Origin: Octopus bimaculoides
Taxonomy: Eukaryota
Reading direction: 5' to 3'
Assembly: GCF_001194135.2 (NCBI RefSeq)
Contig: NC_068981.1
Span: forward strand, 25,164,138-25,228,137
DNA: 64,000 nucleotides
A model generated the notes under the pieces. That model saw only the letters and a list, made by a program, of their open reading frames with translations. It had not been told where the DNA came from and made no database searches. A program made the translations under genes and the position numbers. Positions 27,755 through 55,382 of this stretch are shown piece by piece (the first letter of the stretch is position 1; each line of letters opens with the position of its first letter).

Positions 27755-27769
27755 ATGAAGTCATTTCAA
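27755..27769 (+). CDS. IL17: IL-17-like gene 1, coding exon 1 (MKSFQ), phase-0 donor
   Basis: cataATG AAG TCA TTT CAA|GTAAGTA. The same 5-codon micro-exon layout precedes all three paralogs, and it splices in frame to the acceptor at 30726. Confidence 0.8.
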
Positions 27770-27797
27770 GTAAGTATTATCTGATACATAATTATAT

Positions 27798-27869
<72 letters not shown>

Positions 27870-28821
27870 AAGAGATAGAGAGAGAGAAATACAAGTCTAT
27901 ATGTTATTATTTGTGTCACCCTTATTTATAAATGTGTATTCATCAGGGTAGGGCAGTTAGACTGCTCCTAGAGAAAATAAAACTATAAATATAATTTGTT
28001 AAATATATAAAATTTTAATTATTTACGATTCATTAGAAATGCGGCGGAGTTTCAGAATAGCTATCTCTATCTTCTGAGGAGCAAAAACAAGTACAAAAAT
28101 AGGAAGCGGGCAAAAACTCTGAGAAAAAATTATTCTTTCAGAATCTTAATTGCCGTTGTATGAAACATGGAATTATGGAAAAAAATGAAAGAAAAAAAAC
28201 CCCACGTAATTCCTGCCCTTCTTTCTCATGAAATAGTGGTAGGCCTTCCGTAAGCTCACTATATGTGATTTTTAAGTCTTGTTAGGAACTTGAACACTTT
28301 TGCAGAGATGTAACAACCATGTGATTAGAAAGCTTACCATTTACGTTGATATCTGGCTTCATTGTAACACGGAATTTTTCATTGAGTGTTTTTCTGTTTC
28401 GGTTGCGGCCAACCACTGAATGCATTCATAATAGAGATATTAACTGATATGTTGAAAATTAAGCAACACCTGTGCCTTAAGCTTTTTAAAGTTAGGAAAG
28501 GCCTTGGATAGGACCAATTTCAATCTATGAACAACATAAACTCCTCCCCAGTAAACGAAACAAAACTGGTTGACATTAGTGCTAAAAAACGAAGTCGTAG
28601 GTGCTACATCGAAGGTTTCCTTCTAGAGAGATATCTAAGCAAAGACTAGGTGTCTCTTACACCCAACTATTGGATGGCCGTTGACTCTACTGAATCTTCC
28701 TTTGACAGGCTTTGTAGTGTTGCTGGTTTTGTCATGGACGGTTTTTCCATGCAACAAGTAGTGCTAGATTAGTTACATGTTATCCGTAGCACTAAGAATA
28801 ACTTGTCACACATACATGTAT

Positions 28822-28852
<31 letters not shown>

Positions 28853-28858
28853 TACATG

Positions 28859-28890
<32 letters not shown>

Positions 28891-28904
28891 CATACATATA
28901 TACA

Positions 28905-28936
<32 letters not shown>

Positions 28937-30591
28937 GGTATACTTAAACAAACACAAACATACCGTCTAAATATTCGTTGATAGAACGGGCAAGGTGTTC
29001 GAAAAGTCATATTTTAGTACGAAGAGTGATATTTGCAGTAAAAAAAGACAAAACCAAACCACGCCAAAATCATTAACTAGGCAGATTTAGACCGATCATG
29101 CACATTTTATGAATACTCTATCCTCCCATAACTTGTCAATATTAGATGAGCATATATGATCTCGTACAGTAATATTCAAAATATTATGTAATATGAATTT
29201 GGTTTTGTTCTAACTTCAGTACGAATAGTAAATGTTGAGTCTGAGATATGGTGGAAGCAAACAATACACGCCACAATATTTGGCGTGAATATTTCCAATG
29301 TTAATTATTACGCAATTACATCAATTCCATTGTCGAAATATCCACAATAAGTAATTCATATGTCAAATAATGTTGTATATTGTATATATGGATTGAATAT
29401 ACAAACAATGTAACAAGATATTTCAATTTAATGCATATTTGTAAGACAAAGTTGATATACATAAAATTTAAAGGTTTTCAAATTTTATTATTAATATCGA
29501 ATCCATTTCTCTAACCTGCAAATATGAAAATAAATCTTTGAGTGTCTGTATTTGTAACAGTAAATAAACATATACATACACATGATCAGTGCGACATATT
29601 AGACTACGTAAACGACAGCCAAGAACGCTAAAATCTGGGGGCCACTGCACAAATTCTGAACCACTTGAAATTTCTTAATCCAACAAAAACACGAAGTCGC
29701 AGTAAAAAATAGAGCAGGAGTGATCACTCCTGGAACAGAGGAAAACAGAGGAGAACAGAGGAAAACAGAGGAAAGGGTTTTAGTGGGACGGATAAGACGA
29801 GAAGGTTTTGTGATATTATAAACTGTCATACAATTTGTCGGAAAACATTTCGAATTTTTTCTCGATACGCCAAAGAAATTTATTCAGTGATATGCATGAT
29901 AATAAAAGCTAACAATAATATCGCAACTGCATTTTTCATTTGCTGTAAAAAGAGTGGTGACTGGAGGAATTTGTGTGAAAAATTGTTAAAGGGGACTAGG
30001 TGAAATGGTGTACAATGTAGGACTACAAGAAGGAAGTACACCATGAAGCCGATATAAGGAGAATACTTTGCAGAGCTCCGAGAAAGGACCAGTCTTGCAA
30101 ATTCATGATGACAATACTTCAGCACTGCAACACTAATTTATAAAGAAACCATTAAAACATGTAATTTCAGTAGTGTCTTTGTTATCTTCAGCAGATTTGC
30201 ACAGTTTGTAGTGCACCTTTTCTCAGTTTAAATGTAACTACCTTATACTTACATAAACACATTTTGACGAAATTAGGAGTGTCGACCTGCGAATTCACAC
30301 AGTATATATCTGCCTACTACCACTCTTAATGCTTTTGTTATAAAACTATCTTGTTTCTCTCACTTCGTTTCTCTCGCTTCGTTCTCTCTTACCTTCATAA
30401 TGACAATGGCTTTACTTATTATTAACAAACAAAAGAAAAAAGAAAAAGAAAGTATCGTACACTAGCTCATTGTATATTATGTCATCCCCAAGCTCTCTTC
30501 AACACTTTAAATTGCTTTTCATTTAAAACTTTATCGAAAGTTATATATTCAACTCTATAAAATAAACAACAGTAATATTATTGTTCGTAAA

Positions 30592-30632
<41 letters not shown>

Positions 30633-30726
30633 AAAATAAATTATCTTAAATGTATTTATTCGGACAAATATATATCATTTTGAAAGTAAAAAAACACCAC
30701 TTTATTAATATGATTTCTTTTCACAG

Positions 30727-31227
30727 TTTCTAAACTACTTTCTCCTCAACTTTATCTTGACTGTATCTTCGGCACCAATGCAGACCAAATGTAAAATACC
30801 AACGAACTTGATAGTACATTACAACAGATTGTCCGGTGCATCCATTGGCAATAAGTTTTTTCTACCAGCTGAAATGGCTCCAGCAGGAAGTAACCAGCGA
30901 CCACAAACCGATGGGGATAGAACTTTTCCAACATCTCTGGTTTCTATTAATATCGTCCGCGAACGTTCAACCTGCCCTTGGTATCTTAAAATTATCCATG
31001 ATCCATCAGTTTTCCCTCCATCACGTACTGAAGCGATATGTCGCTGTAGATACTGTCTAGACTCTGACGAAAATCACCAATGTGTAACAGTATATTCTAA
31101 AACGACTGTCCTGAAACGTACAGGTGAATGTGTTGATGGATTGTATGCGTATAGACCAAGTGTGATTCAAATAGCCACAGCCTGTGTGTGTGCAAAGAAA
31201 GTCGATATCATTTCTGGCAAAAAATGA
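30727..31227 (+). CDS. IL17: IL-17-like gene 1, coding exon 2 (signal peptide remainder plus cystine-knot domain); predicted full protein 171 aa
   Basis: Acceptor tttcttttcacag at 30726, then in-frame FLNYFLLNFILTVSSA|PMQTKC. IL-17 hallmarks RERSTCPWY, EAICRCRYC, CVTV, ATACVCA. Intact ORF with TGA at 31225-31227. Confidence 0.93.
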   Translation, partial: FLNYFLLNFILTVSSAPMQTKCKIPTNLIVHYNRLSGASIGNKFFLPAEMAPAGSNQRPQTDGDRTFPTSLVSINIVRERSTCPWYLKIIHDPSVFPPSRTEAICRCRYCLDSDENHQCVTVYSKTTVLKRTGECVDGLYAYRPSVIQIATACVCAKKVDIISGKK

Positions 31228-31574
31228 CCAAGTTTACGAGTCGTAAAAACGCCAGCCTACCGTTTTGAAATGCGTGTAACGCAAATGTCATTCATAATTT
31301 TATGAATCTTTAAGTAAACCACTATGTGGTCATTGTGTTATTTCTTATATTTTGTTAATACCTTTAATATATGCAACTGTTTTATATTTCATAATCATAA
31401 ATATGTTCAATGAAATCCCAAGTCATTACTATGTAATGAATTAAAATTGTTAGCATATTGTTAACTATATCATTATCTAAATAACAGTATGTTATTTAAT
31501 TATAAGTGTACATATTAATCAATTTATAATATATAACTGCGCTAGACGCAGCGTCACTCTTTCTTTACTCGCAT

Positions 31575-31638
<64 letters not shown>

Positions 31639-33717
31639 NNNNNNNNNNNNNNNNNNNNNNNNNNNNNNNNNNNNNNNNNNNNNNNNNNNNNNNNNNNNNN
31701 NNNNNNNNNNNNNNNNNNNNNNNNNNNNNNNNNNNNNNNNNNNNNNNNNNNNNNNNNNNNNNNNNNNNNNNNNNNNNNNNNNNNNNNNNNNNNNNNNNNN
31801 NNNNNNNNNNNNNNNNNNNNNNNNNNNNNNNNNNNNNNNNNNNNNNNNNNNNNNNNNNNNNNNNNNNNNNNNNNNNNNNNNNNNNNNNNNNNNNNNNNNN
31901 NNNNNNNNNNNNNNNNNNNNNNNNNNNNNNNNNNNNNNNNNNNNNNNNNNNNNNNNNNNNNNNNNNNNNNNNNNNNNNNNNNNNNNNNNNNNNNNNNNNN
32001 NNNNNNNNNNNNNNNNNNNNNNNNNNNNNNNNNNNNNNNNNNNNNNNNNNNNNNNNNNNNNNNNNNNNNNNNNNNNNNNNNNNNNNNNNNNNNNNNNNNN
32101 NNNNNNNNNNNNNNNNNNNNNNNNNNNNNNNNNNNNNNNNNNNNNNNNNNNNNNNNNNNTATATATATATATATAAATCTTTAGTTAAATATATTCAATG
32201 AGAATATCATATACTGAATTTATATTGAGTGTTGTATTGTATCAGATTATTAATGCTATTAAAGTATCTATGTATTTAACACGAGCGGTGCAACGTGTAT
32301 TTAAATATAATAAATGTATTTATATTTTCGCTTTTATTGTATATGCCTGTATATAAATGTCTATAATAACTTCAAGTAACGTTAAAAATTCATAAATATA
32401 TGTTATATATTATATATTATATATAATACTGAATAATTCATTCAATGAAAATTGATACGTATATATTGTGTTGTACATATTAATTTGCTATTAAAACCTT
32501 CTTTTATATCAATTTATTTTAAAATAAAAACATGTTAAATAATATTTTAACTCGTTAATATTTTCTTGAATTAATTCAATGGTGTTACTTCTCTCTAGCC
32601 ATAACAATTAATCGATATGCATTTGTAAGTCCACATTATAATACTACTTGTATTACAATTGCCGTACTTTAATGTATATTTCATACATAAAGTGCCATTG
32701 CGAATAACTCCGTTTATTTCGGTTATCAGTCGTAACAATTAATGTAATTTCTGATAGTTTCGCATTCCACCAAGCTGATGAGCAGTATTGACAGTCAGAG
32801 AATTCTCAAATTCTTTTAGATCACATTATACCTATGTTACATTCATGCAGTCTCCATACTAACCAAACAACAACAATAGCAACAACAACAACAACAACAA
32901 CCTCAAAGCGTTTATTTTGTTTTAACTCTTAATAAGGCTTCGCTTTTACTCTCCCTTTATTTCTCTCACATATCCATCGCAAAGCTTTCCTCTGATGCTA
33001 CTACGTAGAGATCAACCAGTGTTTTGATATCCTAAATCCATTTTCTAGCTAAAAAGCGAAAACATAATTTATGGAAGAACAAAACTCTGCCATCATAGTG
33101 GTTCATGCGGCTCATTAAGTCTCTCATATTTTAAGCAACTCCATTCATCAATGTTCTTCATACTGCTTTCCATTCGACCATCAAATCAAGAATCAGAATA
33201 ATCAGTTGACCCGATTAATGGAACAGCTTGCTCATGAAATAAATAAATACTGTATATATACATATATNNNNNNNNNNNNNNNNNNNNNNNNNNNNNNNNN
33301 NNNNNNNNNNNNNNNNNNNNNNNNNNNNNNNNNNNNNTATATATAATATATATAATATACAGAAATAAATTTATTTCTCAAACGCGTGATCAGGATAAAT
33401 TATCCATTTATTGCAGAAAAATACGTTACTGGCCAGCCATGAGACGTAACCAACATAAATACAAAGACAAACTGTTTTGTCAACAACGAGAGAAGCAAAT
33501 GGAATACAAGACAACCGACATAAAGAAGAACCTTTCATCAGTTATCGGCTGTATATCAAAACTGTCCGACGAACGGGAACGTGGAACTCTGAGTAACAGC
33601 TTCTGTTATATTTCTACTGCTTTTAAATAAAGCTCATTACTCTGGTATTTGAGTACTCTTTTTCCCACCTTGTTTTACACTTATGTGCTTACTCCCGTAT
33701 ATATAAATATATATACA

Positions 33718-33890
33718 TAGGCGTGGGAGTGGCTCTGTGGTAAGTAGCTTGCTTACCAGCCACATGGTTCCGCGTTCAGTCCCACCGCGTGGCACCATGG
33801 ACAAGTGTCTTCTACTATAGCCTCGGGCCGACCAAAGCCTTGTGAGTGGATTTGGTAGACGGAAACTGAAAGAAACCTGTCGTATATATG
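33718..33890 (+). mobile_element. Family-A CORE-like SINE (5' part)
   Basis: Near-identical to 62763-62920 (ggagtggct.tgtggtaagtagcttgcttacca.ccacatggttcc..gacggaaactgaaagaa). Confidence 0.85.
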
Positions 33891-33949
<59 letters not shown>

Positions 33950-34476
33950 CTGTGTGTGTGTCTGTGTTTGTTGCAATTACTATTACTCCATGGAGCAGAC
34001 GACGAAGCCTTCTACATAGATTGTCGCTTGCTAGAAATAGCAGTCACATTACTCTCAACTGACTCTATACTCCCTTCAAGAAAATAAACGGGCACATTGA
34101 ATAACGTCCTCATAATAATATTGTTTGAACATATAAAAACGGGTGGTCATGGTTGAAATACTTTAAATCACGTGTCTGCTTTCAGAATTAACCTGCAAAA
34201 CGACTATGTTATAGATTTCCCTAATTTTTCTGCGTCTCTTTCCTCTCTCACTTTCTCCGTCTCTTTCTCTCTCCCACTCCCTCGTTCTCTCTCCCACTCC
34301 CTCGTTCTCTCTCCTTCGTGCTCTCTTCCTCTCCTTCATTCTCTCCCTCTTTCCTCTCTGTATTTGTTTCTTCTCGCGGGTTTGTGTTTCAGATACGCTC
34401 TATTTAATTATTTAAATAAAATATGACAGTATATTTTAGTATAAACATCCACACACCTACATAAGCACGCTCACTA

Positions 34477-34706
34477 GGAATGCATGCAATGAGCTTCTCT
34501 GTCCTAGAAGTACGGAAAACACTCGGCGAGAAATGGAAGAAAATTTGAAGAAAAAAAAATGATAATAATAATAATAAACACTGCTTGGAACGGCTCGAAT
34601 ACTCCGGATGGTGCTCGAAAATTTAGGGGTGTTACCTTAGGTCACTGGTAGTGAACAGCTGGCACTGTAGTACATCTCCAGCGTTAGAAGCTGTGCAAAG
34701 ATGATG

Positions 34707-34790: not shown

Positions 34791-34795
<5 letters not shown>

Positions 34796-34984
34796 ATGCT
34801 GGACATTTGATTCTTTACAATCAAGAGAATCCCGTAAGCTATGATCCTGATTTAATACCAAAATGTATCTATATCTAAAAAATATATGACATGTCATTGT
34901 GGCTTTTAATTTATTTAATTTATTCCTGTGTCTTAAATATAAAATTTAACTTAATTATCCTGCCCTCGAATATTATTAATTTCT

Positions 34985-36680
34985 CGAAAGGTTGTCATAA
35001 ATCGATCGTAGAGCAATTTAATGCATTGATTAATGGAGAAGAAATCCCGGGCTGGTTGACCAAAGAACGAACGGTGTTTTGTCTGAAGGATCCATCAAAG
35101 GGAAATACTGCTGATAATTGCAGACCAATTTCTTGCCTCGCATTAATGTGGAAATTACTATCTGGAGGAATTGCAGAAGACTGTATGAATTTCTTGATGA
35201 GAACGATATATTACCGCCCGAACAAAAAGGCTGTAGAAAGAGATGCAGAGGTACCAAAGATCAATTACTGATAGACAAAATAGTAATGCAAGATTGTAAA
35301 CAAAGGAGAACACATTTGGGAACGGCCTGGATTGACTGTCACCAAGCTTATGATATGATTCCACATTCGTGGATCATAGAATGCTAAGATCTGTTTGGAA
35401 TTGCGAGGAATGTATCGTGATTCCTGAAGAGAATTATTGTAGTGTAGAAAACTGAACTGACATCATGTAGATAGAGCTTAGGCACGCAAGGTACCAGAAG
35501 AGAAATTTTCCTGGGTGATAACTTATCTCCATTGCTTTTTGTTCTCTGCATGATACCCCTGACCTTGGTACTTAGGAATATGAACCTGGGGTAACAATTA
35601 AAGGAAAAAATCTCAAACAATCAATCATCTCTTCTTCATGGATGATTTGAAACTGTATGGCAAGGATGAAACACAAGTGAGTTCCTTGGTGAACACGGTT
35701 TACTATTTTAATACTGATATTAGAATGGAATTTAGACTCAAGAAGTGCGGAATAATCTATCTAAAAAGAGACAATGTACAGTCCCTAGTGAGGATAGAAT
35801 TACTGAACAGAGACTTGATTAACAAACTGAAATGAAAGGCTACAAATACTTTGGTGTACAAGAGTTCAATGAGATAATGGAGAAGGAAATGAAAGAGCAA
35901 CTGAGGATGGAGTACGTCCAAAGACGAAGATTGGTATTGCGACTCAGAATTGATGGATGAAATATAATCCAAAATGTTACGGTCAATCTGCAAGAGATGT
36001 GAACTTGACGACAAATACAGAGGACCGGTGGCTATGGATGAAGAGAAATGACCTGAAGATACAGACAGAAGCATTCATATGCACAGCTCAGGAATAAACG
36101 TTAAGGATCAACTATGTGAAATATAGAATAGACAACACTACAGAGAGCGACAAATGCAGAATGTGTGGTGAGAGGAGTGAAATGGTATGGCACATCGTTA
36201 GGGAGTGACCGAAATTGGCACATCGCAAATATAAAAGACACCATGACAATGTGGCAAGAATTATCCATTGGGAGCGCTGTAGAGATCACGGTCCACAAAG
36301 AACAAAGACATGGAATGAGAAAGCCCCAGAAGGAGTCACCGAGAATGAGAATTGCAAAATCCTGTAGGACACAATGATGCCGTGCGACCACCTGACCAGA
36401 CATCGGAAACCAGATGTTGTTGTGGTGAATAAAAAAGAAAGAACATAGCATGCCCCGGTGACAACAGGATCCATGTGAAAGAAAAAAAAAAAAACAACTG
36501 TGACGATTCCAGGATCCTAATGAAAAAGGAAGAAAAACACAAAGAAAATACAATCCCTTAAAATTTGAAATAGGAATAATTTAGAGCATGCGAACAGTAA
36601 AGGTCTTGCCTATATTAAATGATGCGTTGGGAACCGTAAGCCGAGATATAGACAAATTGTTGAAAGAGATTGCAATACAT
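34985..36680 (+). mobile_element. Degenerate R4/Dong-clade retrotransposon (RT domains 1-7, knuckle, RLE), truncated at both ends
   Basis: [54 protein letters not shown]; LFMDDLKLYGK; CRMCGERSE; KPDVVVVNK; ..TVKVLPILNDALGTVS. Confidence 0.88.
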
Positions 36681-36890: not shown

Positions 36891-37050
36891 AGGCGCAGGA
36901 GTGGATGTGTGGTAAGTAGCTTGTTTACCAACCACATGGTTCCGGGTTCATTCTCACTGCCTTGGGCAAGTGTCTTCTGTTATAGCCTCGGGCCGACCAA
37001 AGCCTTGTGAGTGGATTAGGTAGACGGAAACTGAAAGAAGCCCGTCGTAT
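36891..37050 (+). mobile_element. Family-A CORE-like SINE (5' part)
   Basis: ggcgcaggagtggatgtgtggtaagtagcttg..ccttgggcaagtgtcttc..gacggaaactgaaagaagcccgtcg. Confidence 0.85.
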
Positions 37051-37388
37051 ATATATATATATATATATATGTNNNNNNNNNNNNNNNNNNNNNNNNNNNN
37101 NNNNNNNNNNNNNNNNNNNNNNNNNNNNNNNNNNNNNNNNNNNNNNNNNNNNNNNNNNNNNNNNNNNNNNNNNNNNNNNNNNNNNNNNNNNNNNNNNNNN
37201 NNNNNNNNNNNNNNNNNNNNNNNNNNNNNNNNNNNNNNNNNNNNNNNNNNNNNNNNNNNNNNNNNNNNNNNNNNNNNNNNNNNNNNNNNNNNNNNNNNNN
37301 NNNNNNNNNNNNNNNNNNNNNNNNNNNNNNNNNNNNNNNNNNNNNNNNNNNNNNNNNNNNNNNNNNNNNNNNNNNNNNNNNNNNNNNN

Positions 37389-38282: not shown

Positions 38283-38668
38283 GTATCATTAGAATAAGTA
38301 TAATTATAATAAAGTAAATACTTTTGATAGAAATACTAAGAAAAAAAAAAAAGAAAAAGCATAGAATAATGTTTCTTATAGTAGACATTAGTTATTCGAG
38401 AAACCCGTGGAAATTGAGAGACATTATTAATCTAATTACATTAATGTCAATAGCAATTAATGAATGGCATTATTTGAGCCAACAGTTACGTGTCCGTAAA
38501 GAGAAGTCTGCATGTTTACGCTTAAGTGGCGCTCGGACATCCGACTGTATGTAAGTCTAGGATGTAAACATTTCCATTGTTACTCTTCCGTCGTTTTATG
38601 CCTTTAACCCCCGAATTTTTGGCATGATGTTTCCTTGTGGGTAGTTTTCGGTGTGATATATATACATG

Positions 38669-38676
38669 TATATAAG
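38669..38676 (+). promoter_or_regulatory. Candidate TATA box (TATATAAG) of IL-17-like gene 2
   Basis: Lies 132 nt upstream of the ATG. The identical octamer is 136 nt upstream of the gene-3 ATG. Confidence 0.5.
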
Positions 38677-38800
38677 CAAACACATGTATGCAGGCTAATA
38701 TCATTCCGAATCTGTACTCCACTACGGAACGGACACATCTCACTTGTAATATATCTTATTGTTGCCGTCTCTTTTTATTTCCAAGTGAACTATCAGCGTA

Positions 38801-38815
38801 ATGAAGATAACTAAA
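38801..38815 (+). CDS. IL17: IL-17-like gene 2, coding exon 1 (MKITK), phase-0 donor
   Basis: cgtaATG AAG ATA ACT AAA|GTAAGTAAACTTAT, in frame with the acceptor at 42945. Confidence 0.8.
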
Positions 38816-39746
38816 GTAAGTAAACTTATATTAATAGCTATTATCATATTATCTGTGTATGTGTGTATGTACTTCTAAATACATTATATCTTACATATAT
38901 TCAACAAATCAAATCTGGTTCAACAAATCATAAGTCGAAACTTGATATCCAGTTAATTTGTTCTCAGAAAATCCTAATTCAAATATGAGTATGAAATCGC
39001 GCCACCAATATATATTGCACTGTTATCCTTAAAAATTATTATAAATTAATAGCAATTTCTTAACATTTACGTACATATTAACTTATTTCCAGGAGATTTT
39101 ATTGTGAAACACACGCTCTGAACACACGTAGTTTCAGGTTTAGTTCAGCTGCGTGGCACACTGGGCTGGTGATTTCTGCTGACGTCTAGTGAGCGAACTT
39201 CGTAAAGGGGAAACTGTGAGGAATCTCGTCATATATATATATATANNNNNNNNNNNNNNNNNNNNNNNNNNNNNNNNNNNNNNNNNNNNNNNNNNNNNNN
39301 NNNNNNNNNNNNNNNNNNNNNNNNNNNNNNNNNNNNNNNNNNNNNNNNNNNNNNNNNNNNNNNNNNNNNNNNNNNNNNNNNNNNNNNNNNNNNNNNNNNN
39401 NNNNNNNNNNNNNNNNNNNNNNNNNNNNNNNNNNNNNNNNNNNNNNNNNNNNNNNNNNNNNNNNNNNNNNNNNNNNNNNNNNNNNNNNNNNNNNNNNNNN
39501 NNNNNNNNNNNNNNNNNNNNNNNNNNNNNNNNNNNNNNNNNNNNNNNNNNNNNNNNNNNNNNNNNNNNNNNNNNNNNNNNNNNNNNNNNNNNNNNNNNNN
39601 NNNNNNNNNNNNNNNNNNNNNNNNNNNNNNNNNNNNNNNNNNNNNNNNNNNNNNNNNNNNNNNNNNNNNNNNNNNNNNNNNNNNNNNNNNNNNNNNNNNN
39701 NNNNNNNNNNNNNNNNNNNNNNNNNNNNNNNNNNNNNNNNNNNNNN

Positions 39747-39779
<33 letters not shown>

Positions 39780-39782
<3 letters not shown>

Positions 39783-40215
39783 CGGGTGATAGATAAATTG
39801 TCATCATTTTATATTTTTAATTTTGTCGATTACACAGTATAGTAGGGTCAGTTGGGCACTGTGTGTGAGAAAAACAGCACCATGACACGATTCACTCTGC
39901 CTGAAATTTGAAACGGACATACTGCACTGCTTGGAATTTGCACCGGTAGCTCCAATACACACAGAAAAACTGTTGGCTTGCCGTATCCCTAAACTATGTA
40001 CCGAGAGTGATAAAATCAAACATTCAATCAACATCATAGTGTTTGGAGTGATCACTAGTGATGGCTGTGTTATGCCTTCATTCATCTTCCCACATGACCT
40101 CAAACGCAACACGGAGGCTTACATGAAGTGCCTGGAGGCGGTAGTGCTGCCTTGGGTCAAGAGGTGACAGCTGGAAGAACCTATGTCTGACAACAAGACT
40201 CAGCACCATGACTTG
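39780..40215 (+). mobile_element. Tc1/mariner transposase fragment (DD-catalytic region), decayed, within intron 1 of gene 2
   Basis: KHSINIIVFGVITSDGCVMPSFIFPHDLKRNTEAYMKCLEAVVLPWVKR, then VTAGRTYV*QQDSAP (the QQD.AP.H motif). Candidate TA|CAGCGGGTG terminus at 39780. Confidence 0.75.
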
Positions 40216-40249
40216 AATACTGTCCTGATATCATATGGGCCGCATAGGG

Positions 40250-40658
40250 TAGACAGACTGTGGACAGTTTATTGGTTTTATCCTCTATTTTTTTTCATAA
40301 TTGAAGTGGATAGTATGTTTTTGGGGTAGTTGTTGCTTAACAGATTTTTACTGAGCTTGATCATTTCTTCGTGGTGTATATCACGATCGCTTCTTATATT
40401 CTTTGCTCGACGTTTTAGGCACTGAGCAGTCCCTCTCTTTACAATGTATGGATGGCGGGAATTGAAGTTGAGGTATCGTCCAGTGAAGGTCGGCTTGCGG
40501 TATACGGATGTCCTGAATCCATACTTGGTGCGTGTTATTAATATGTCCAGGAATGCTAGTTGATTGTCTTTTTCCTTTTCCACTGTGAACGGTATGGATG
40601 GCTCTGTTGAGTTCACATGATCTAATATGATCCCACCATCCATACAGTGTAAAGGGTA
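40250..40658 (-). mobile_element. Penelope-like element RT thumb fragment within intron 1 of gene 2
   Basis: VNSTEPSIPFTVEKEKDNQLAFLDILITR..TSVYRKPTFTGRYLNFNSRHPYIVKRG..RAKNI..LLSNNYP, the characteristic PLE FT.E.E/FLD/VYRKPT/S.HP/N.YP series. Confidence 0.85.
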
Positions 40659-41559
40659 ATATTGCACTGTTATTCTTAAAGATCAACTGCAATTTCTTAA
40701 CATTTACGTACATATAAACTTATTTCCAGAAACACGCGCTCTGAACACACGTAGTTTCAGGTTTAGTCCAGCTCATATAGGTTTAGACTTCTGCTCATAT
40801 TAGGTTCATTCTTTCATCTGATGATACGTTGGGTCAGAGTCGTGTGACAAAGAATGTTTCTCAAGGAGCTGCCTTCCAAGTCTTATGATGTTATCAGGTG
40901 CAAGTATGCAAACTTGATCAAGGGATGCACTTCGGCACTTGGTGGTGAAAAGATGTTGCCAAAGGTATATGATGCAACATTCAAAAGCATTTTATATCGA
41001 TGTTAAACCTCTGCCGTCTTGTTTTCGTTTTAGGTAGAGGTGATCTACATCACTGTTTATGTGGAAATTACGTGTGTTTGTTAGTATTTTTCGGCTTTTC
41101 ATATCACTGGCTCGATCTCATCAAGCGACCAATATATGTGTGTATGTGTGTGTATGCATGTATTCGTGTATGTGTATGCATATATATATATGTATGCATG
41201 CGTGCACGTTTGTATGTATGTATTCTACATATCCATGTGCTTGTATCGTCATGTTTGTGTATTTGTGTGTTTGCGTGTTTGTATTCATGTTTGTGTGTTT
41301 GTGTGTGTGTATGTGTGTGTCTCTATGTGTATGTGTATCTCTGCCTCCTTGTGTATACAGGTTTTGGTATGTCTGAGTATGAGTTTGTGTGACTATGTAT
41401 GTACGTCTGTTAGGTGTGTCTCCATGTATCCTTGTGTGAAGTCTGCGTGTGTGTATACGGTCATGTGTTTCAGTCTTCGTTTCTATGTATGTATGTATGT
41501 ATGTATGTATGTATGTATGTATAGACCACCCACAATCATCTCGGTGGCAGAGAAAAGCA

Positions 41560-41985
41560 CTGCAGAGCGTTGGAGTGGCTGGAACACACCCACCCAAGAT
41601 CCCGAGAATAACAGTCCGGTGAAAAGAATGATCGCACATGCAATAGGAGCTAGCGTAAGAACCACATAGTAAAGTTTAACAAGAAACTATACATGCAGTT
41701 TCAAGGTGCAGCCATTGGTGTCTGTGTTGCTGGAGATGTGGTCTCCCTCTTCATGACTTGGTGGAACAGAAAACTAAAACAATTCTGAGCAGAACAATCC
41801 ACTACTGTTTTACTTTACTGCAGTTATGTAGATGACATTAACATTCTAGTTAAGACAAACTCTAGTAACTGCAATGTCGAAACCGAGTGGAGTATAATGA
41901 AGAGCATCCAGCATGGAGCCGACTCCATCTACCAAAGTATCAAGGTAACGATAGATTACCCCACAGATTTGCACACAAAAAAAAA
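41560..41985 (+). mobile_element. Second, different Penelope-like RT fragment (motifs B and C) within intron 1 of gene 2
   Basis: HIVKFNKKLYMQFQGAAIGVCVAGDVVSLFMTWWNRKLK, then LLYCSYVDDINILV, then KSIQHGADSIYQSIKVTIDYP. Frameshifted. Confidence 0.7.
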
Positions 41986-42945
41986 CAAACAAAACAAAAA
42001 GAATGCAGATCCGATAACGGACAGAGTCAACGACTATTGAAAAGGTTGCAAGACGCAACGGAAATTTTAGTAAAAATAAATAAGTAAATAAGTGGAAATC
42101 GGTGAGTGTGTTAAATTAATAAGGCACTAAAAGAGAATTACTCTACTTAGACACAATAAAATATGCTTCAACACACGAATTCACATAAGGAATCTTGCAA
42201 ACCAAATACAAAAACTGATATTCCAGTTCAAATACATTTAAGCTATAAATACCAACTGGAACTTCTAAGGAATTTATGTCTAACACCCTGTTATACGCAT
42301 TTAGCTCAGATCACAGGACTGCACGGACTCATGTAACACTTTTTCCTGATCTCTTCTCTCATGCTTGCATGCTGAATGCTAAAGTTTTCATTACAAAAAA
42401 AGAGAAAACTAACTTTTGTGTATTTTTGTGTAAGAATTACTCGGTGGCTCAAGGTTTCTGGAGAAGATTGCGAAATCTACGCTTTGCTAAAATATTTTAA
42501 GAGCGAAATAATTATGTGTATTTCTCCAGTACATTTAGAAACAGTTTTCGTCAATGAATTTATGTCTTTTCCACATCACTTAATTGTTTCTAATTAAGAT
42601 TTTAATGCTCACTAAAATCGCATGTGAACAAAATTTCTTGAATGTGTTGTGTATTGTAAGCATGTTATTTAATTAATACATCATTTCATTATATTTCACC
42701 GTTCATCATTTTCAGTGATGTCTATAAATAATTGTAAATATATCAAGCATATTAGAAATAAGGTATTCACTGTTTTCATTGACACTTGATTCGATATTCT
42801 CTACAATTTTCTGTTTGTAAGAATTCAGTCTTTTGTATAAAATCTAGCTTCTTTGAATTAGAGGATGATAAATATATTACTAATACATATCGTGTATTAC
42901 ACATTTATTTATGTTATTTGAGCTTAAATATTCTTTCTCTTATAG

Positions 42946-43458
42946 GTGCTCCCCCAGATTGTAATCTTCCTAGCCTTCAATGTCATCTTGTTTGTCTCTT
43001 CGGCGTCAATTCCAAGCCAATGTGAAATACCAAAATCTCTGAAAGTTCATTTCGAGAGTCTGCCCAGAGCAGACATGGGTAATAATTTTTTTCTACCCGT
43101 TGAATTACTTCGAGCCGAAAGTATCTCGACCCCACTAAGCGATGGAAATCTAACTTGCCCAGAATCTATTGATTCTTCCGGTAACATACGTGAGCGTTCA
43201 ACCTGTCCTTGGTACCAGAAAACTACTTATAATTCAAGACTTTACTTTCCATCATATACTGAAGCAGTGTGTCCATGCAGTAATTGTCAGGACCGTGACA
43301 AGAATTATCAGTGTGCTACAATTTTTTCTAAAATAACTGTCCTCGAACGTACAGATGAATGTGTTGGTGAACTGTGTATATACAAACCAATTGTAGTTGA
43401 TGTAGCAACAGCTTGTGTTTGCGCACGGAAAGTCAGCAAGCCAAGTAAAGGAAATTAA
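42946..43458 (+). CDS. IL17: IL-17-like gene 2, coding exon 2; predicted full protein 175 aa
   Basis: Acceptor ttctttctcttatag at 42945, then VLPQIVIFLAFNVILFVSSA|SIPSQC. Motifs RERSTCPWY, EAVCPCSNC, ATACVCA. Intact ORF. Confidence 0.93.
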   Translation: MLPQIVIFLAFNVILFVSSASIPSQCEIPKSLKVHFESLPRADMGNNFFLPVELLRAESISTPLSDGNLTCPESIDSSGNIRERSTCPWYQKTTYNSRLYFPSYTEAVCPCSNCQDRDKNYQCATIFSKITVLERTDECVGELCIYKPIVVDVATACVCARKVSKPSKGN

Positions 43459-45221: not shown

Positions 45222-47110
45222 TTTATATTTAAATCTTATTTTATTTATATTCTTAAATTACACATCTTTTACTTCTTATAAATATATATACATATTATTA
45301 TCATTATTATTAATATTTAAATCTCATTTATATTTTTAAATCACATGGCTTACATTTTCTTTTAATGAATGAATGAGCTACTCCGCGTCGGACACCGGAG
45401 TAATATTTGATCATTTTATAGAGTGCTCGGGTATTGGTTTGGTGTCTGCAATGTAATAGCTTACTTCATGGGCATGTAGAAGTTCTTTAACCTTGGTTGG
45501 TAATCTATCTAGAAGAAGGAAACCTGATGCCTTGGAAGTTCCTGGTTTTGTCAATTTTCATGTCATACCGGCGAAAGTCTTCTTGGGCCAATAGTTAGGG
45601 ATAGTGCAGTGCAAGCTATACTCACTGAAAATTATTCATCTACACGCACACACATACACACACATATATATGCATATATAGATAAATGTTTACACACACA
45701 CACATATATATATGAGTGCGTGTGTATGCATATGTATATATATATATGAGTGAATGTTTGCATATATATATATATACATATATATTTATATATGTATAAC
45801 CCCCCCCCACACACACACACATACATATGAATACGCAAGTGCATACAAGTACGCATACTTTTTACAATAGTATTCACATTCTTGATAGCATGTTTATTTA
45901 TATATATTTTTTATATATTTGAAAATTAATATTTTGTTAATGGTAAATATTCACTTTTACTTCAATATTTATTTATTTATTTCTTACGTAATTTTCATTT
46001 TTTGTTTTACTTAATATAACAATTTTTGTATAGCCGAGTGTCGATTGTAAATATATCTAAATACATTTTACATCTGTATCAGATGCTTTTTATAATTCGT
46101 GAAACAAGAAGAGATAGTTATAAATTTGTACAATGTTGTAATTTAATTTATTAAATGTAGCTTTCTTTGTAACCAATAAAATACATTATTAATTCAAATC
46201 TTATTCGTCTTTATTTTCACTTCAGCATGTTTTTCTTTAACTTGTTATAGTAATCTAAACTGTGCACTGCTTAACTCGCTGATTCGATTTAATAATGGGC
46301 TACCAGATGTCTGAATGAATCCTTTTAAATCATTTTATATATATGTATGTGCATATATATATATATATANNNNNNNNNNNNNNNNNNNNNNNNNNNNNNN
46401 NNNNNNNNNNNNNNNNNNNNNNNNNNNNNNNNNNNNNNNNNNNNNNNNNNNNNNNNNNNNNNNNNNNNNNNNNNNNNNNNNNNNNNNNNNNNNNNNNNNN
46501 NNNNNNNNNNNNNNNNNNNNNNNNNNNNNNNNNNNNNNNNNNNNNNNNNNNNNNNNNNNNNNNNNNNNNNNNNNNNNNNNNNNNNNNNNNNNNNNNNNNN
46601 NNNNNNNNNNNNNNNNNNNNNNNNNNNNNNNNNNNNNNNNNNNNNNNNNNNNNNNNNNNNNNNNNNNNNNNNNNNNNNNNNNNNNNNNNNNNNNNNNNNN
46701 NNNNNNNNNNNNNNNNNNNNNNNNNNNNNNNNNNNNNNNNNNNNNNNNNNNNNNNNNNNNNNNNNNNNNNNNNNNNNNNNNNNNNNNNNNNNNNNNNNNN
46801 NNNNNNNNNNNNNNNNNNNNNNNNNNNNNNNNNNNNNNNNNNNNNNNNNNNNNNNNNNNNNNNNNNNNNNNNNNNNNNNNNNNNNNNNNNNNNNNNNNNN
46901 NNNNNNNNNNNNNNNNNNNNNNNNNNNNNNNNNNNNNNNNNNNNNNNNNNNNNNNNNNNNNNNNNNNNNNNNNNNNNNNNNNNNNNNNNNNATATATATA
47001 TATATATATATATATATACGTGTATATATATATATATGTAATATGTGGGACTGAGCCCGGAACCATGTAGTTGGGAAGAACGTTTCGCACCATACAGCCA
47101 CGCCTGCGCT

Positions 47111-47141
<31 letters not shown>

Positions 47142-47171
47142 ATTCAAATATGAATTGGAAGCAGTTAGAGG

Positions 47172-49217: not shown

Positions 49218-49253
<36 letters not shown>

Positions 49254-49924: not shown

Positions 49925-50125
49925 TAAACTGGCAGAATCGGTAGCACGCTAAGCAAAATACCTGGCGGCATTTCGTCCATCTACGTTCTGAGGTCAAATG
50001 CCGCCGGGGTCGACTTCACCTTTCATCCTTTCGGGGTCAATAAAATAAGTGCCAGCTGAGTACTGGGCTCGATCTTATCAACTTAGCCCCTCCCCTCAAG
50101 TTACTGGCCTTTGCCAAAATTTAAA
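49925..50125 (+). mobile_element. Family-B SINE
   Basis: ctggcagaatcggtagcacg..gccgccggggtcgacttcacctttcatcctttcggggtc matches 61938-62165. Confidence 0.8.
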
Positions 50126-51394
50126 ACCAATAATCACAACGGCTAGTACTCAGTATATTCCTTCGTAGAACATCGGTACTCTACAACTCTCCCACAGTAT
50201 ATCTTTTCCCTGCAGTTGTCGACTGGAAATGCTAACTGCATCAGTATCAAGAGGAACTCTTCCTGTATGACAATCGCCAGTCTTGGGACGCCTGTGAAGT
50301 TTATGGCACGCAGACTTCTGAAAGTAATGAACCTGCACTGCTCCACGCTTTATATTCGCAAACAGACACCCGTCCTAGATTATCTACATCGTCTTAGAGT
50401 AGCTATGGAAAGAACCATAATTTTTCGTTTCTTGAAATTTCTCATCGTCCCAATAATACCGTTCGAATTACTCTGACGATCTTCTCTTTTCGAAAACAAT
50501 TTAAATATTTTAGATATCTTAAGCTTACCATAAAGTTATTATTTAAACCAAGTTTAGACCTCTCTGATTACAATAAAAATGGAGGCTGTATGTATATTAA
50601 TTAATGTATTAACTGGTGACGTATATTCGGTAGTTATGGCACAAGAGAGACAACGTAGCACATCAGAGATTATGTGTATTAATGATTCTTGTATAATAAT
50701 ATATACTTCTAAACTTATTCCTAGCAAATGTAAAAGCTGCTCCGAAACCTAAGATAATATTGTAATGAAGAAGAGTTGTAAATTAATATAACTTAAAATG
50801 GTTGTTCAACCATTATTTGGAGATAAAAACTATTTGTGTTTATAAATGGAAAGCTTAGCATGTGACAATTTTACTGCTAAAGAATATGTTTAAAGCATAC
50901 ACAACCCTAGGTGTTTGCTGGATGGCTACTGTTGAACGCCTTTGTTTCTATTTCTATTCCGTCAGAACTACGATTGGGTTAAGCATGAACAACGAAAACA
51001 TTCACAACTTAACAAATGATTTGCCTCAGTTAGAGCTGAACACTTCACCACGCACAAAGACACACACACACACACACAGACAAGCCTACATGCGCGCGCA
51101 CATGAAACTATGAATATACAACAGAATGATGTAAGAGTTATCATTTTTGTATTACTGTATAAATCGTAGCAACGCTGACCCGTTCTGTATCCATTGTTTG
51201 TGGATATAACGTTGAAACAAATTAACAAATTATAAAAGATATTTCTTGCTTACTTTAGGTCCTCCCTCTGTGTACAAGTCGAAGCAGTCTTCTCACTTGT
51301 TAGTTCCATCTGTTACAAAAATCAATTAATTTATTCGCCTTACATTGTTTCATGTCATGTCGGATTTCCTCTGCCTCGACTGGTTTTCAAGACT

Positions 51395-51402
51395 TATATA
51401 AG
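51395..51402 (+). promoter_or_regulatory. Candidate TATA box (TATATAAG) of IL-17-like gene 3, with a kappaB-like GGATTTCC at 51362-51369
   Basis: Lies 136 nt upstream of ATG 51531 and is positionally matched in gene 2. Confidence 0.5.
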
Positions 51403-51530
51403 TAAATCTAGGACAGCTGATAACATTTCAAAAGCGTATCACATTGAGGAACGAACCCCCTCGGGTTTCAGTCGTAAAATATCGTATTGTTTTCCTTGAT
51501 TTTTCAATTTTCAACTGAAGAATCAGTATA

Positions 51531-51545
51531 ATGAAGAAAATTTCA
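51531..51545 (+). CDS. IL17: IL-17-like gene 3, coding exon 1 (MKKIS), phase-0 donor
   Basis: tataATG AAG AAA ATT TCA|GTAAGTAAACTTAT, in frame with the acceptor at 54848. Confidence 0.8.
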
Positions 51546-51626
51546 GTAAGTAAACTTATGCTAATTACCTCATCTGATGTATTTCAGAATACGTTTACAT
51601 ACATACATACATACATATGTCATACA

Positions 51627-51657
<31 letters not shown>

Positions 51658-51829
51658 GTCATACGTACTGTGTCATACGTACCCAGACGTTCTCACCAGA
51701 TGCTTCCTCGACGTCATTTTGTCTAATTTCAAACCGACGTATGGAGTATTCTTTTAAACCCTGTTTTAAAATACCATAGCCCACTCGAATAGGGAGTCGT
51801 TGCCTACCTTGCCTAATGTAGCCCACGGT

Positions 51830-52150
51830 TGCTGGCGTAGCTTTGCAATAGGAAGCCTACTTCTCAACCACATAGTTCCTGGTTCAGACGGAAACTGAAA
51901 GAAGCTCGTTGTATATTAATATGTACAATATCAATGCGTGTATCTTTGTGTCTGTGTTTGTCCCCGCCATCACTTGACAATCGGCGCAGGTGTGTTTACG
52001 TCCCATAACTTAGTGGTTCAGCTTACGGGATCGATAGAATAAGTACTAAGCTAAAAAATACTGTCCTGGCGTCGATTTGTTCGACAAGTACTGCTGAGGT
52101 GGGTACCTCAGTATGGCTGAAGTTACATGACTGAAACAAGTAAAAGATAA
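51830..52150 (+). mobile_element. Family-A SINE with internal deletion (intron 1 of gene 3)
   Basis: Head, then gacggaaactgaaagaagc, then the 3' body (cacttgacaa.cgg..acttag.ggttc..atgactgaaacaagtaaaaga), as in 62763-63168. Confidence 0.75.
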
Positions 52151-53585
52151 ATAAAAGAATGCAAGTTGATGTTTGCAATCGTTTAGGACGCTAGCAGAGA
52201 TTGTGGCAAGGCCTGCTGCCGAATCGAATTTAATTTTATTAATTGTTGCAGTGATTTCATTAGTGCTGAGCGTTATACATGGGAGGATATGTGAGGATTT
52301 GCATAATCAATATGGCCTACTTCGATCTCACCGAAATCACTTTAGATCAACCAGTATTGCTTCTGTAGAACTTCCACCATATATTTGGCATCATTGTGAA
52401 GATTTTGTATTCATCGATTAGGAGGCTATGAAGGGAATGTAGCCCAAAGCGCAAGCTGTTATTCCTTTGACAAATCAAAAGAATGAAAGCTTTGGTATTG
52501 CACAGGCCACACTTCATCGGCGGTCCTTAAATATTTATAAATGTATATATAAGTGTATATCTATATGTATGTATTTATGTATGTCATTATCCAGTTATTT
52601 CAAGATTTCTTGCAAAAAGAGAACGAACCGGTTTCTAACCTAGATCAGATCCAAGGCTCCTTCATTGGAATTTCAACATCAACAACAGAGTATTTTTGTA
52701 TGTATGTATGTATGTATGTATGTATGTATGTATGTATGTATGCTATCGATCAGTTTCATTTCTGTATTTCTTGTCCATAGAGAAAGAGCCGGACTCTAAC
52801 ATAGATTCAAGGCTCCTTCATTGGAACTTTTACCAACATCATCTAGGTATTTGTGCNNNNNNNNNNNNNNNNNNNNNNNNNNNNNNNNNNNNNNNNNNNN
52901 NNNNNNNNNNNNNNNNNNNNNNNNNNNNNNNNNNNNNNNNNNNNNNNNNNNNNNNNNNNNNNNNNNNNNNNNNNNNNNNNNNNNNNNNNNNNNNNNNNNN
53001 NNNNNNNNNNNNNNNNNNNNNNNNNNNNNNNNNNNNNNNNNNNNNNNNNNNNNNNNNNNNNNNNNNNNNNNNNNNNNNNNNNNNNNNNNNNNNNNNNNNN
53101 NNNNNNNNNNNNNNNNNNNNNNNNNNNNNNNNNNNNNNNNNNNNNNNNNNNNNNNNNNNNNNNNNNNNNNNNNNNNNNNNNNNNNNNNNNNNNNNNNNNN
53201 NNNNNNNNNNNNNNNNNNNNNNNNNNNNNNNNNNNNNNNNNNNNNNNNNNNNNNNNNNNNNNNNNNNNNNNNNNNNNNNNNNNNNNNNNNNNNNNNNNNN
53301 NNNNNNNNNNNNNNNNNNNNNNNNNNNNNNNNNNNNNNNNNNNNNNNNNNNNNNNNNNNNNNNNNNNNNNNNNNNNNNNNNNNNNNNNNNNNNNNNNNNN
53401 NNNNNNNNNNNNNNNNNNNNNNNNNNNNNNNNNNNNNNNNNNNNNNNNNNNNNNNNNNNNNNNNNNNNNNNNNNNNNNNNNNNNNNNNNNNNNNNNNNNN
53501 NNNNNNNNNNNNNNNNNNNNNNNNNNNNNNNNNNNNNNNNNNNNNNNNNNNNNNNNNNNNNNNNNNNNNNNNNNNNNNNNNNNNN

Positions 53586-53631
<46 letters not shown>

Positions 53632-54099
53632 ACACACACGCACACGCACACACTCATACACGCACACACAGCAAATTTAGTCCCTCCTGATACTCAAACC
53701 ATTCGCACGTTCGGTGATCTATGATTTCTTGCTGGATCATACCATGAAGGCGAATTCTTGTGAATCACGTCCTCAACAAATGCGTGTAAACTCCAATATT
53801 CACTTTATGGTCCTTCACCGCCATTCTTCTTTACAGCAAAACTCTACAAATATCCAACTTTACGTTTAAGTTCTTTGATAAATTTCCGCATGGAATAGTT
53901 ATCCGTAGACTCTTCACTTCAAACCTTTGCGGACAACATGAGCGGAAAGAGTATATAAGAAAGATTGTAATCATACTGCATATCCTAAGTTTCTACATTT
54001 TGCTGTATATCATGCTATAAATCAAATGAAATTTTGTAATGCTCGGGGAAGAAAGCGCTTTATCAAATAACGATTGTTTATTTAGGAATTCACACACAT

Positions 54100-54560
54100 A
54101 AGCGCAGGCATGACCGTGTGGTTAAGAAGTTTGCTTTACAACCATGTGGTTTCGGGTTAAGTCGCACTACGCAGCGCTTCCGTAAATGCCTTCTGCTATA
54201 GCACCTGGCCAACCAACGCCTCGTGAATGTATTTGGTAGACTGAATTACACTCACTTACACACAGACACACATGCACACACACGCACATACACGCACACA
54301 TACACACATGTATACAAGTATACATGTTATATATACGCGCGCGAATATACTTGTCTTTGTGTTTATGTTTCTCTCTTACTTCCGGTTGACGACGGGTGTT
54401 ACTTTGTTTTAGCTTGGTAACTTAGCGGTTCGGCAAAATAAACCGACAAAATAAGTACCAGACTTAAACAAAATAAGTAGAAGTTGATTTGTTCGATTAT
54501 AGCCTCCAATGAGGGCTCAGTCCAATGATTGAAACACTGAAAGATAAAAGATAATAGAAA
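54100..54560 (+). mobile_element. Degenerate family-A SINE with central microsatellite (intron 1 of gene 3)
   Basis: gcgcaggcatgaccgtgtggttaagaagtttgct..accatgtggtttcgggtt and the 3' body aacttagcggttcggcaaaa. Confidence 0.65.
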
Positions 54561-54848
54561 TCGGTTTCATTTTCCCTTTCTACTTAGAACATATCTCGAC
54601 TGCTTTACCAATGAACCCATAAAATATATTTTAAATATATATTTGTGACTTATCTTTTTCTTTCTGAGATATTTAACTTACCATTGATCATTCATTGCAT
54701 GCTCAGAGGCAAGTCTCTGTAATGTAGACTCTCATAAAATGTCTTATGTTTATAAATGTTTAATATTCTTGTTAAGCTTCTTTTTTTTTTTTTCCTTTAT
54801 CATGTTGTGGTATGATACATTTCTTTATCATATATATCTTTCTCACAG

Positions 54849-55382
54849 ATTGCCGCCCAAATTGTAATTCTCATTTTCAACTACGACATTACTGTATCTT
54901 CAAGAAGTGGGGAATGTAAAAAACGCAATGACTCGAATGCATCATACGAAAGTCTGTTTATGAAATCCATTGGCCACAATTTCTTTGTACCTCCTTCGAT
55001 GGTTCCCCACGAATTCTGCGACCCACCACTTACTGCTGGAGTAAAAAGCTGCTCGCAATTTCTCCCTACTAACAAAATAGTCAGGGAAAGATCAACCTGT
55101 CCTTGGTACGTGACCATTATTCATGATCCAACAATTTTCCCTCCCCGTCGAACTGAAGCAGTGTGCCGCTGTGAAGGGTGTATCGAATCGTACCGTCATC
55201 ACAAATGTGTAACTGTGTTCACTAAAATGACTTTTCTCAAGCGTACACCTGAATGTATTGATGGACTGTATATGTATGTCCCATTGGTGATGGACGTGGC
55301 CGTTGCATGCACGTGCGCGGCGAATATCGAAAAGGTCGATAATGCTTCGATATATGATTATGTTTATGATACTGAAATTTAA
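54849..55382 (+). CDS. IL17: IL-17-like gene 3, coding exon 2; predicted full protein 182 aa
   Basis: Acceptor tctttctcacag at 54848. The frame is open from 54849 (IAAQIVILIFNYDITVSS|RSGEC..) through the ATG at 54960. Motifs RERSTCPWY, EAVCRCEGC, AVACTCA; TAA at 55380-55382. Confidence 0.92.
   Translation: MAAQIVILIFNYDITVSSRSGECKKRNDSNASYESLFMKSIGHNFFVPPSMVPHEFCDPPLTAGVKSCSQFLPTNKIVRERSTCPWYVTIIHDPTIFPPRRTEAVCRCEGCIESYRHHKCVTVFTKMTFLKRTPECIDGLYMYVPLVMDVAVACTCAANIEKVDNASIYDYVYDTEI

Follow-up and report, generated by a model that had tools for sequence, protein, structure and literature searches.

Cytokines of the IL-17 family are secreted dimers that signal via SEFIR-domain IL-17 receptors. 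The bivalve family is expanded, two exons being its commonest gene structure, and IL-17 models devoid of a signal peptide have been suggested to be misannotations in which the corresponding exon is missing (Saco et al., 2021, Front Immunol, PMC8353272). The same study gives 36 IL-17 genes for Octopus bimaculoides and cites Albertin 2015 for 31 octopus genes, and the octopus expansion has been reported as octopod-lineage-specific (PMC8257504). In the sea urchin, the SpIL17-1 and SpIL17-4a genes form tandem arrays and have been verified by 5' rapid amplification of cDNA ends (5'RACE) (Buckley et al., 2017, eLife, PMC5457136). Here we describe a 64-kb stretch of DNA (hereafter the window), identical in sequence to ~25.16-25.23 Mb of chromosome CM046601.1 in the O. 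bimaculoides assembly GCA_001194135.2 (first window base at about 25,164,138), in which three neighbouring IL-17-like genes (genes 1, 2, and 3, at ~25.19-25.22 Mb) lie in tandem on the + strand. A first-pass annotation of this DNA had proposed that each of them carries a hidden 15-nt first coding exon far upstream of the exon for the IL17 domain, and had taken a tandem IL-17 expansion in octopus as established, which the gene counts and the lineage assignment mentioned above bear out. The analyses reported here indicated that the window very probably contains three paralogous two-exon genes, in each of which the ATG and four further codons would lie in an upstream exon 1 and be joined to exon 2 by phase-0 splicing.

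In this arrangement, exon 1 would consist of a 5' untranslated region (5'UTR), the ATG and four codons, and would be followed by a strong GTAAGT donor. Next would come a phase-0 intron, roughly 3-4 kb long and full of microsatellites and transposon remains, and then exon 2, which is predicted to supply the remainder of the signal peptide (its hydrophobic core and cleavage region) together with the entire IL-17 cystine-knot domain. Splicing would thereby place the initiator Met ahead of the hydrophobic core and give the product entry to the secretory pathway. The three IL17 exons, which had been described as starting in phase 0 after an AG, were recovered base for base, and the coordinates given earlier for the upstream modules (coding for MKSFQ, MKITK, and MKKIS) and for the introns proved to be exact (Table 1). 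All three acceptors are preceded by a pyrimidine-rich tract (68-76% C/T) and then CAG or TAG, an in-frame stop is located 0-11 codons 5' of each acceptor, position -3 of each exon-1 ATG is a purine, and the introns are AT-rich (33-38% GC). The first in-frame ATG of exon 2 corresponds to residue 23 (gene 1), 49 (gene 2), or 43 (gene 3) of the full product; since it falls past the hydrophobic core, a product made from exon 2 only would not carry the signal sequence.

Table 1. Position of the features of the three IL-17-like genes and of the DNA around them (window coordinates; slashes mark splice junctions)
Feature	Position	Strand	Details
Gene 1 promoter/5'UTR-homologous region	27681..27754	+	nhmmer profile match 27681-27776, E=2.8e-5
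Gene 1 exon 1 coding part, MKSFQ	27755..27769	+	ATGAAGTCATTTCAA then donor GTAAGTAT
Gene 1 intron	27770..30726	+	2957 nt, phase 0, gap-free
Gene 1 exon 2	30727..31227	+	acceptor ...tcttttcacag/TTT; rest of signal peptide and IL17 domain; ends TGA; 171 aa
Gene 2 TATATAAG box	38669..38676	+	132 nt 5' of ATG; profile match 38667-38824, E=1.7e-15
Gene 2 exon 1 coding part, MKITK	38801..38815	+	ATGAAGATAACTAAA then donor GTAAGTAA
Gene 2 intron	38816..42945	+	4130 nt, phase 0; holds gap 39246-39746
Gene 2 exon 2	42946..43458	+	acceptor ...ctcttatag/GTG; IL17 domain; 175 aa
Gene 3 TATATAAG box	51395..51402	+	136 nt 5' of ATG; profile match 51361-51554, E=2.1e-26
Gene 3 exon 1 coding part, MKKIS	51531..51545	+	ATGAAGAAAATTTCA then donor GTAAGTAA
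Gene 3 intron	51546..54848	+	3303 nt, phase 0; holds gap 52857-53585
Gene 3 exon 2	54849..55382	+	acceptor ...tctcacag/ATT; IL17 domain; 182 aa
Intergenic assembly gaps	31639..32159, 33268..33337, 37073..37388, 46370..46991		
Intronic assembly gaps	39246..39746, 52857..53585		genes 2 and 3; estimated lengths 501 and 729 nt
Insertion in gene 2 intron vs O. sinensis	39246..42582		~3.3 kb (gap + ~2.8 kb); starts at the gap
Open reading frames in the insertion	40278..40713, 39804..40112	-	no Pfam match
Reverse-transcriptase fragment	13705..14019	+	Pfam RVT_1, 33.6 bits
Broken open reading frames near it	2233..4179, 8106..9621, 14046..14360, 34891..35271		no significant domain
Dispersed repeat copies	62765..63168, 33717..33955, 36898..37070, 17451..17574, 51912..52156, 54116..54551, 61709..61935	both orientations	
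Gap-edge/microsatellite stretches (examples)	27800..27890, 31570..31638, 51590..51660, 55450..55480		

In keeping with the family assignment made earlier, a search with the IL17 family model of Pfam (PF06083) matched the three products above its gathering score of 24 (54.9, 36.1, and 55.5 bits for genes 1, 2, and 3), with model positions 1-80/81 covered. An alignment of 27 octopod sequences, the three products among them, showed no variation at the knot cysteines C110, C115, C158, and C160 (gene 1 numbering), which form the cystine-knot pattern (C..C in strand 2 and C-x-C in strand 4) and are aligned with the cysteines of human IL-17F in a profile alignment. The profile of these 27 sequences matched human IL-17F/A in the PDB with E ~1e-10. 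An AlphaFold2 model was obtained for gene 1, from an alignment of gene 1 and database proteins; its mean predicted local distance difference test (pLDDT) value was 72.5, with 83-94 over the domain. In a Foldseek comparison of this model with the PDB, the best 50 matches were all IL-17A/F (probability 1.00, target-normalised template modelling (TM) score 0.54-0.75). The products of 171, 175, and 182 aa would start with a basic and then hydrophobic stretch, as had been proposed: charge and hydropathy heuristics gave a net charge of +1/+2 for residues 1-5 and a 10-residue Kyte-Doolittle mean of 2.07-2.96 for the hydrophobic core, and the small residues at -3/-1 around ...VSS/A are compatible with the -3/-1 rule. 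We infer that the genes would be transcribed, that the proposed junctions would be used in genes 2 and 3 of O. bimaculoides, and that the products would be secreted and act as cytokines.

In order to place the predicted products among public models, a collection of 15 billion protein sequences was searched. The spliced product of gene 1 was identical over its 171 residues to XP_014769339.1 (A0A0L8HU75), whose annotated coding sequence spans 3473 bp (27755-31227), and the MKSFQ exon was the sole GT-AG two-exon solution giving this protein. Since the public model equals the predicted product, exon 1 of gene 1 is not hidden. The exact products of genes 2 and 3 were not found in the collection. 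For gene 2, it contained no O. bimaculoides protein, and no gene is called at this position in the annotated chromosome record; the closest entry was XP_029649312.1 of O. sinensis (LOC115223181, 82% identity), which starts MKITK/MLPQ. Gene 3 was on record only as a 127-aa UniRef/MetaClust protein (P0043) starting at Met56 (54999) and devoid of signal peptide, with no genomic position on record, and its closest entry was O. sinensis XP_029649403.2 (LOC115223097, 69% identity), which starts MKKLA/IAVQ. Accordingly, the expectation that gene models would truncate such genes held for the shortened gene 3, for the unmodelled gene 2, and for five paralogue entries with missing or aberrant N-termini (P0016, P0034, P0014, P0017, and P0019). 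The term hidden does not hold in general, since exon 1 is annotated in gene 1 and in every paralogue checked.

Annotated relatives share the two-exon layout. In O. sinensis, exon 1 of the gene 2 orthologue (ATGAAGATAACTAAG, followed by GTAAGT) and that of the gene 3 orthologue (ATGAAGAAACTAGCA, followed by GTAAGT) are joined to exon 2 at the homologous acceptor, and the models of the orthologues of all three window genes use the same junction. Outside the window, four O. bimaculoides paralogues and an IL-17 gene of Argonauta hians have two exons, a GTAAG donor, and a phase-0 intron; their coding start measures 12 nt in P0042 and 15 nt in P0003, P0004, P0011, and the Argonauta gene. In a reference set of nine gene models from these three species, including the model of gene 1 itself, the first coding segment is 15 nt long in seven, 12 nt in one, and 72 nt in one (O. 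sinensis gene 1). The resulting octopod layout, i.e., Met plus 3-4 codons, a GTAAG donor, a phase-0 intron, and the IL17 domain in exon 2, was found in each of the three window genes. The IL-17 of Amphioctopus fangsiao ATB53128.1 starts MNNTN/VLLQ, and it appears to be the only transcript-derived relative, judging by its presumed mRNA origin. The Logan-derived relatives P0026 and P0045 were also considered as transcript evidence and were discarded, their N-termini resembling intron-end read-through on genomic contigs.

The upstream modules share the motif ATGAAG-N9-GTAAGT. In DNA as AT-rich as that of the window, and with elements as short as ATG and GTAAGT, such strings might be matches arising by chance; however, the motif was found three times in the window against an expectation of 0.01, always on the coding strand, 5' of an IL-17 exon and at a proposed exon 1, and none of 100 shuffled windows reached three matches. 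Moreover, eight of the eight matches in ~200 kb of related loci were located at exon-1 sites, and the 150 nt flanking the window motifs are homologous to the promoters of paralogues. These results effectively refuted a chance origin, to which we give practically no weight. The motif had also been put forward as a cluster-wide signature. Its high specificity was upheld but its generality was not, since the literal form misses paralogues using ATGAAT, ATGGAG, GTAAGC, or a 12-nt coding segment. A more inclusive nhmmer profile was built from positions -170 to +24 of five genes located outside the window, none of them an orthologue of the window genes, and its top three matches in the window were the three proposed sites (E 2e-26, 2e-15, and 3e-5). 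A fourth weak match (48572-48637, - strand, E 0.009) was dismissed, as it is confined to the AT-rich TATA segment of the model and shows no exon-like features.

The profile extends into the promoter. The TATATAAG box is located at -132 and -136 in genes 2 and 3, respectively, and at a similar distance in paralogues, the family range being about 132-143 nt 5' of the ATG. From the position of this TATA box, a 5'UTR of ~100 nt is predicted, so that exon 1 would measure ~115 nt, made up of the ~100-nt UTR and 15 coding nt. Since the 15 nt would form the coding end of an ordinary first exon that also contains the 5'UTR, the earlier description of exon 1 as a micro-exon was abandoned. Between O. bimaculoides and O. 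sinensis, the promoter/5'UTR module (-200 to +36) is 90.5-93.6% identical and gap-free in genes 2 and 3, while introns are 84-87% identical with many gaps. Conservation of non-coding DNA between these species was also contemplated as a proof of exon 1, and was set aside as weakly informative because the whole region is 84-92% identical.

The alignment consensus had hinted at a conserved NF-kB-like site 5' of the TATA box. This candidate was rejected, since in a regular-expression scan the only strict match was found in the outside paralogue P0004; genes 1-3 gave no strict match, and near matches were present in P0003 and P0011. In some paralogues, a kB-like sequence is located ~25-35 nt 5' of the TATA box (about 9868-9877 of L006); it is GGGGAATTCC in P0004, and GGTAATTCC and GGTATTTCC in P0003 and P0011. 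Gene 3 contains the kB-like sequence GGATTTCC at window positions 51362-51369, which is not kept in genes 1 and 2.

Genes 2 and 3 had also to be considered in relation to the assembly gaps. Four of the six gaps between 27755 and 55382 are intergenic, and the other two lie in the introns of these genes (Table 1). Since no gap touches a coding exon, the reading frames do not depend on them; gene 1 is free of N over its full span. The intron lengths of genes 2 and 3 (4130 and 3303 nt) include estimated gap sizes, because each intron holds one gap. A different first exon, reached through an alternative promoter or donor and possibly lying inside these gaps, might therefore complete gene 2, gene 3, or both. 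Phase-0 ATG...GTAAG candidates do exist, four for gene 2 and one for gene 3 (e.g., 38512-38550, 42605-42655, and 51110-51130), sea urchin SpIL17-4a has two alternative first exons (PMC5457136), and an O. sinensis IL17 model of 177 aa extends over >80 kb, which means that gene models with a remote first exon do occur in this cluster. Yet homology to annotated first exons, which the proposed modules of genes 2 and 3 show, is absent from all of the alternative candidates. In addition, the orthologous loci of O. sinensis are free of N, run collinear with the DNA on either side of the two intronic gaps, and have exon 1 and exon 2 in contiguous sequence, with the module 899 bp (gene 2) and 2268 bp (gene 3) 5' of exon 2, these being the intron lengths in the public models that use it; and the DNA beside the gene 2 gap is an insertion not present in O. 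sinensis. Completion of genes 2 or 3 by another first exon is consequently very unlikely. The 177-aa O. sinensis model is encoded on the opposite strand and spans three loci (L002, L003, and L004); either the O. sinensis cluster is located inside an intron of this model or the model is a mis-join.

The gap edges that were read (31570-31638 and gap-spanning open reading frames (ORFs)) adjoin microsatellites such as (CA)n and (TA)n, and probably for this reason the assembly breaks at these points. Runs of (GT)n, (GA)n, and (TACA)n were also observed inside introns, distant from gaps (27800-27890 and 51590-51660).

Several observations weigh against three intact, functional two-exon genes. The octopod XP_ models used for comparison are computational predictions, and the call of a secretion signal came from heuristics and not from SignalP. 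Genes 2 and 3 lack a full-length O. bimaculoides model, which could mean that they were expressed weakly or not at all in the libraries used. The ratios of nonsynonymous to synonymous substitution rates (dN/dS) against O. sinensis were 1.11, 0.79, and 1.00 for genes 1, 2, and 3, and substitution rates in exons were equal to or above those of the flanks, exon 2 of gene 3 showing 15% substitutions vs 7-11% in its flanks. Gene 1 accumulates further deviations. A TATA scan did not reveal a TATA box at the homologous place, and its promoter gave the weakest profile match. Residue 75 is Phe (DRTFPTS) where >90% of octopod IL-17s have Cys (KTCPTS). Finally, an extra A in the run 31219-31224 (GGCAAAAAATGA, vs AGC-GAAAATGAC in O. 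sinensis and paralogue P0003) shifts the frame seven codons before the ancestral stop and creates a TGA at 31225-31227. The ancestral tail TAC GAG TCG TAA (...YES*) can still be read out of frame, with its stop at 31243-31245, and XP_014769339.1 carries the frameshifted tail as well. Either this A genuinely shortens a conserved C-terminal motif, or it is an assembly error in a homopolymer. With no TATA box, the Cys to Phe change, and the frameshifted tail, gene 1 is the weakest of the three.

These deviations would be explained if one or more copies, gene 1 above all, were decaying or non-functional duplicates that inherited the two-exon structure and do not use it now; the O. sinensis gene 2 copies, which have lost two conserved cysteines, would fit the same explanation. 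Against it, the ORFs are intact in both species for the three genes, and exon 2 showed 0, 0, and 1 gap openings between species (the single one in-frame) in ~1.5 kb, where ~15 would be expected from the flanking non-coding DNA (~9.6 per kb). Since exon 2 is nearly free of indels in comparison with its flanks, the reading frames have been maintained, i.e., there has been selection against frameshifts. Besides, the four knot cysteines are invariant, neither the splice sites nor the -3 purine before the ATG has been lost, and the promoter module is better conserved than the gappy introns. Values of dN/dS near 1 are common among expanded immune cytokine families, which also counts against decay. 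Such values would fit the rapid evolution of immune genes, although relaxed constraint would fit as well; together with the kept frames they suggest diversifying or relaxed selection, gene conversion or a mix-up of paralogues being a further possibility. We therefore consider decay of one or more copies unlikely, though less so than another first exon, and read the three genes as probably fast-evolving yet functional.

Two further observations were made on the gene 1 leader and its O. sinensis counterpart. In O. bimaculoides, an ATG at 27701 is directly followed by TAA, forming a minimal upstream ORF (27701-27706). In O. sinensis, the homologous upstream ATG is open and in frame, and the NCBI model starts there (L004 10001-10072), adding 19 residues (MLNYLVVVVFSTPESTSCI) before MESFQ; the resulting protein of 196 aa has an unlikely signal peptide.

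Further IL-17 paralogues were located on CM046601.1 between 25.06 and 25.52 Mb, so the trio forms part of an IL-17 cluster that extends over 470 kb or more. Within the 64-kb window, tblastn revealed no IL-17 exon beyond the three already placed. The insertion in the gene 2 intron, with its two minus-strand ORFs, is probably a degraded transposable element. A Pfam scan of the ORFs of this insertion and of the intergenic DNA yielded one match above threshold, the RVT_1 fragment; this fragment and the broken ORFs near it are retroelement remains in intergenic DNA. A dispersed repeat of ~150-420 bp, probably a SINE-like element (short interspersed nuclear element), occurs many times in the window and in either orientation, including within the gene 3 intron, and also in the O. 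sinensis loci, with 72-89% identity. Rfam and tRNA scans of the window gave no matches.

Given the annotated octopod genes and the sea urchin precedents, the finding correctly identifies a gene architecture already described, in a family whose expansion is known, and it reveals no new gene type, mechanism, or family. What is new, and minor, is that gene 2 receives a model in O. bimaculoides and gene 3 a full-length one, models of full length being available for both orthologues in O. sinensis; the main value thus concerns annotation quality. This matters since IL-17 gene counts, as well as claims of invertebrate IL-17s devoid of signal peptide, depend on locating the short first coding segment (PMC8353272). 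As a gene finder, the promoter-plus-exon-1 profile performs well. That such a profile would recover missing or truncated secreted IL-17s of octopus and, jointly, that the early phase-0 intron is an ancient feature of bilaterian IL-17 genes is a tentative proposal, which we hold to be possible but doubtful.

Comparison with other systems places the trio as follows. The annotated octopod IL-17-like genes (XP_014769339.1, XP_014769326.1, XP_029649312.1, and XP_029649403.2) belong to the same family and chromosome cluster and share the two-exon layout; against them, gene 2 is unrepresented in O. bimaculoides and gene 3 is present only in N-terminally shortened form. O. sinensis differs in the start of its gene 1 model at the upstream ATG and in a duplicated gene 2-gene 3 unit, the order on CM016859.1 (134.49-134.52 Mb; L002 and L003) being gene 2, gene 3, gene 2, gene 3. 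Identical proteins are encoded by LOC115223181 and LOC115222992, the copies of gene 2 in this species, and the orthologue at L002 10915-11436 has lost two conserved Cys (TSPES and STSPWY), both of which are kept in O. bimaculoides gene 2. Mussel IL-17 structures range from 1 to 7 exons, and octopus gene structures are not described in that study (PMC8353272). Human IL-17A and IL-17F (PDB 4qhu, 1jpy, and 5nan, among others) resemble the octopus products in their fold (as modelled for gene 1), in the four cysteines of the knot, and in having the Pfam IL17 domain, but identity is 20-29% and the octopus proteins have additional conserved cysteines (C27, C88, C112, C124, and C140, gene 1 numbering). 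With the frames kept, the dN/dS of ~1 would be in line with diversifying selection acting on an arsenal of cytokines. The sea urchin genes are like those of octopus in their two-exon structure, in which the first exon encodes the first residues of the signal peptide (Met plus Glu, or five residues) and the next exon the IL17 domain (PMC5457136). They belong to a different phylum and differ in that exon 1 of SpIL17-1 encodes two residues and SpIL17-4a has three exons and its alternative first exons. By analogy with the latter, a phase-0 intron 2-5 codons past the ATG, common to octopod and sea urchin IL-17 genes, may allow the swapping of promoters and first exons.

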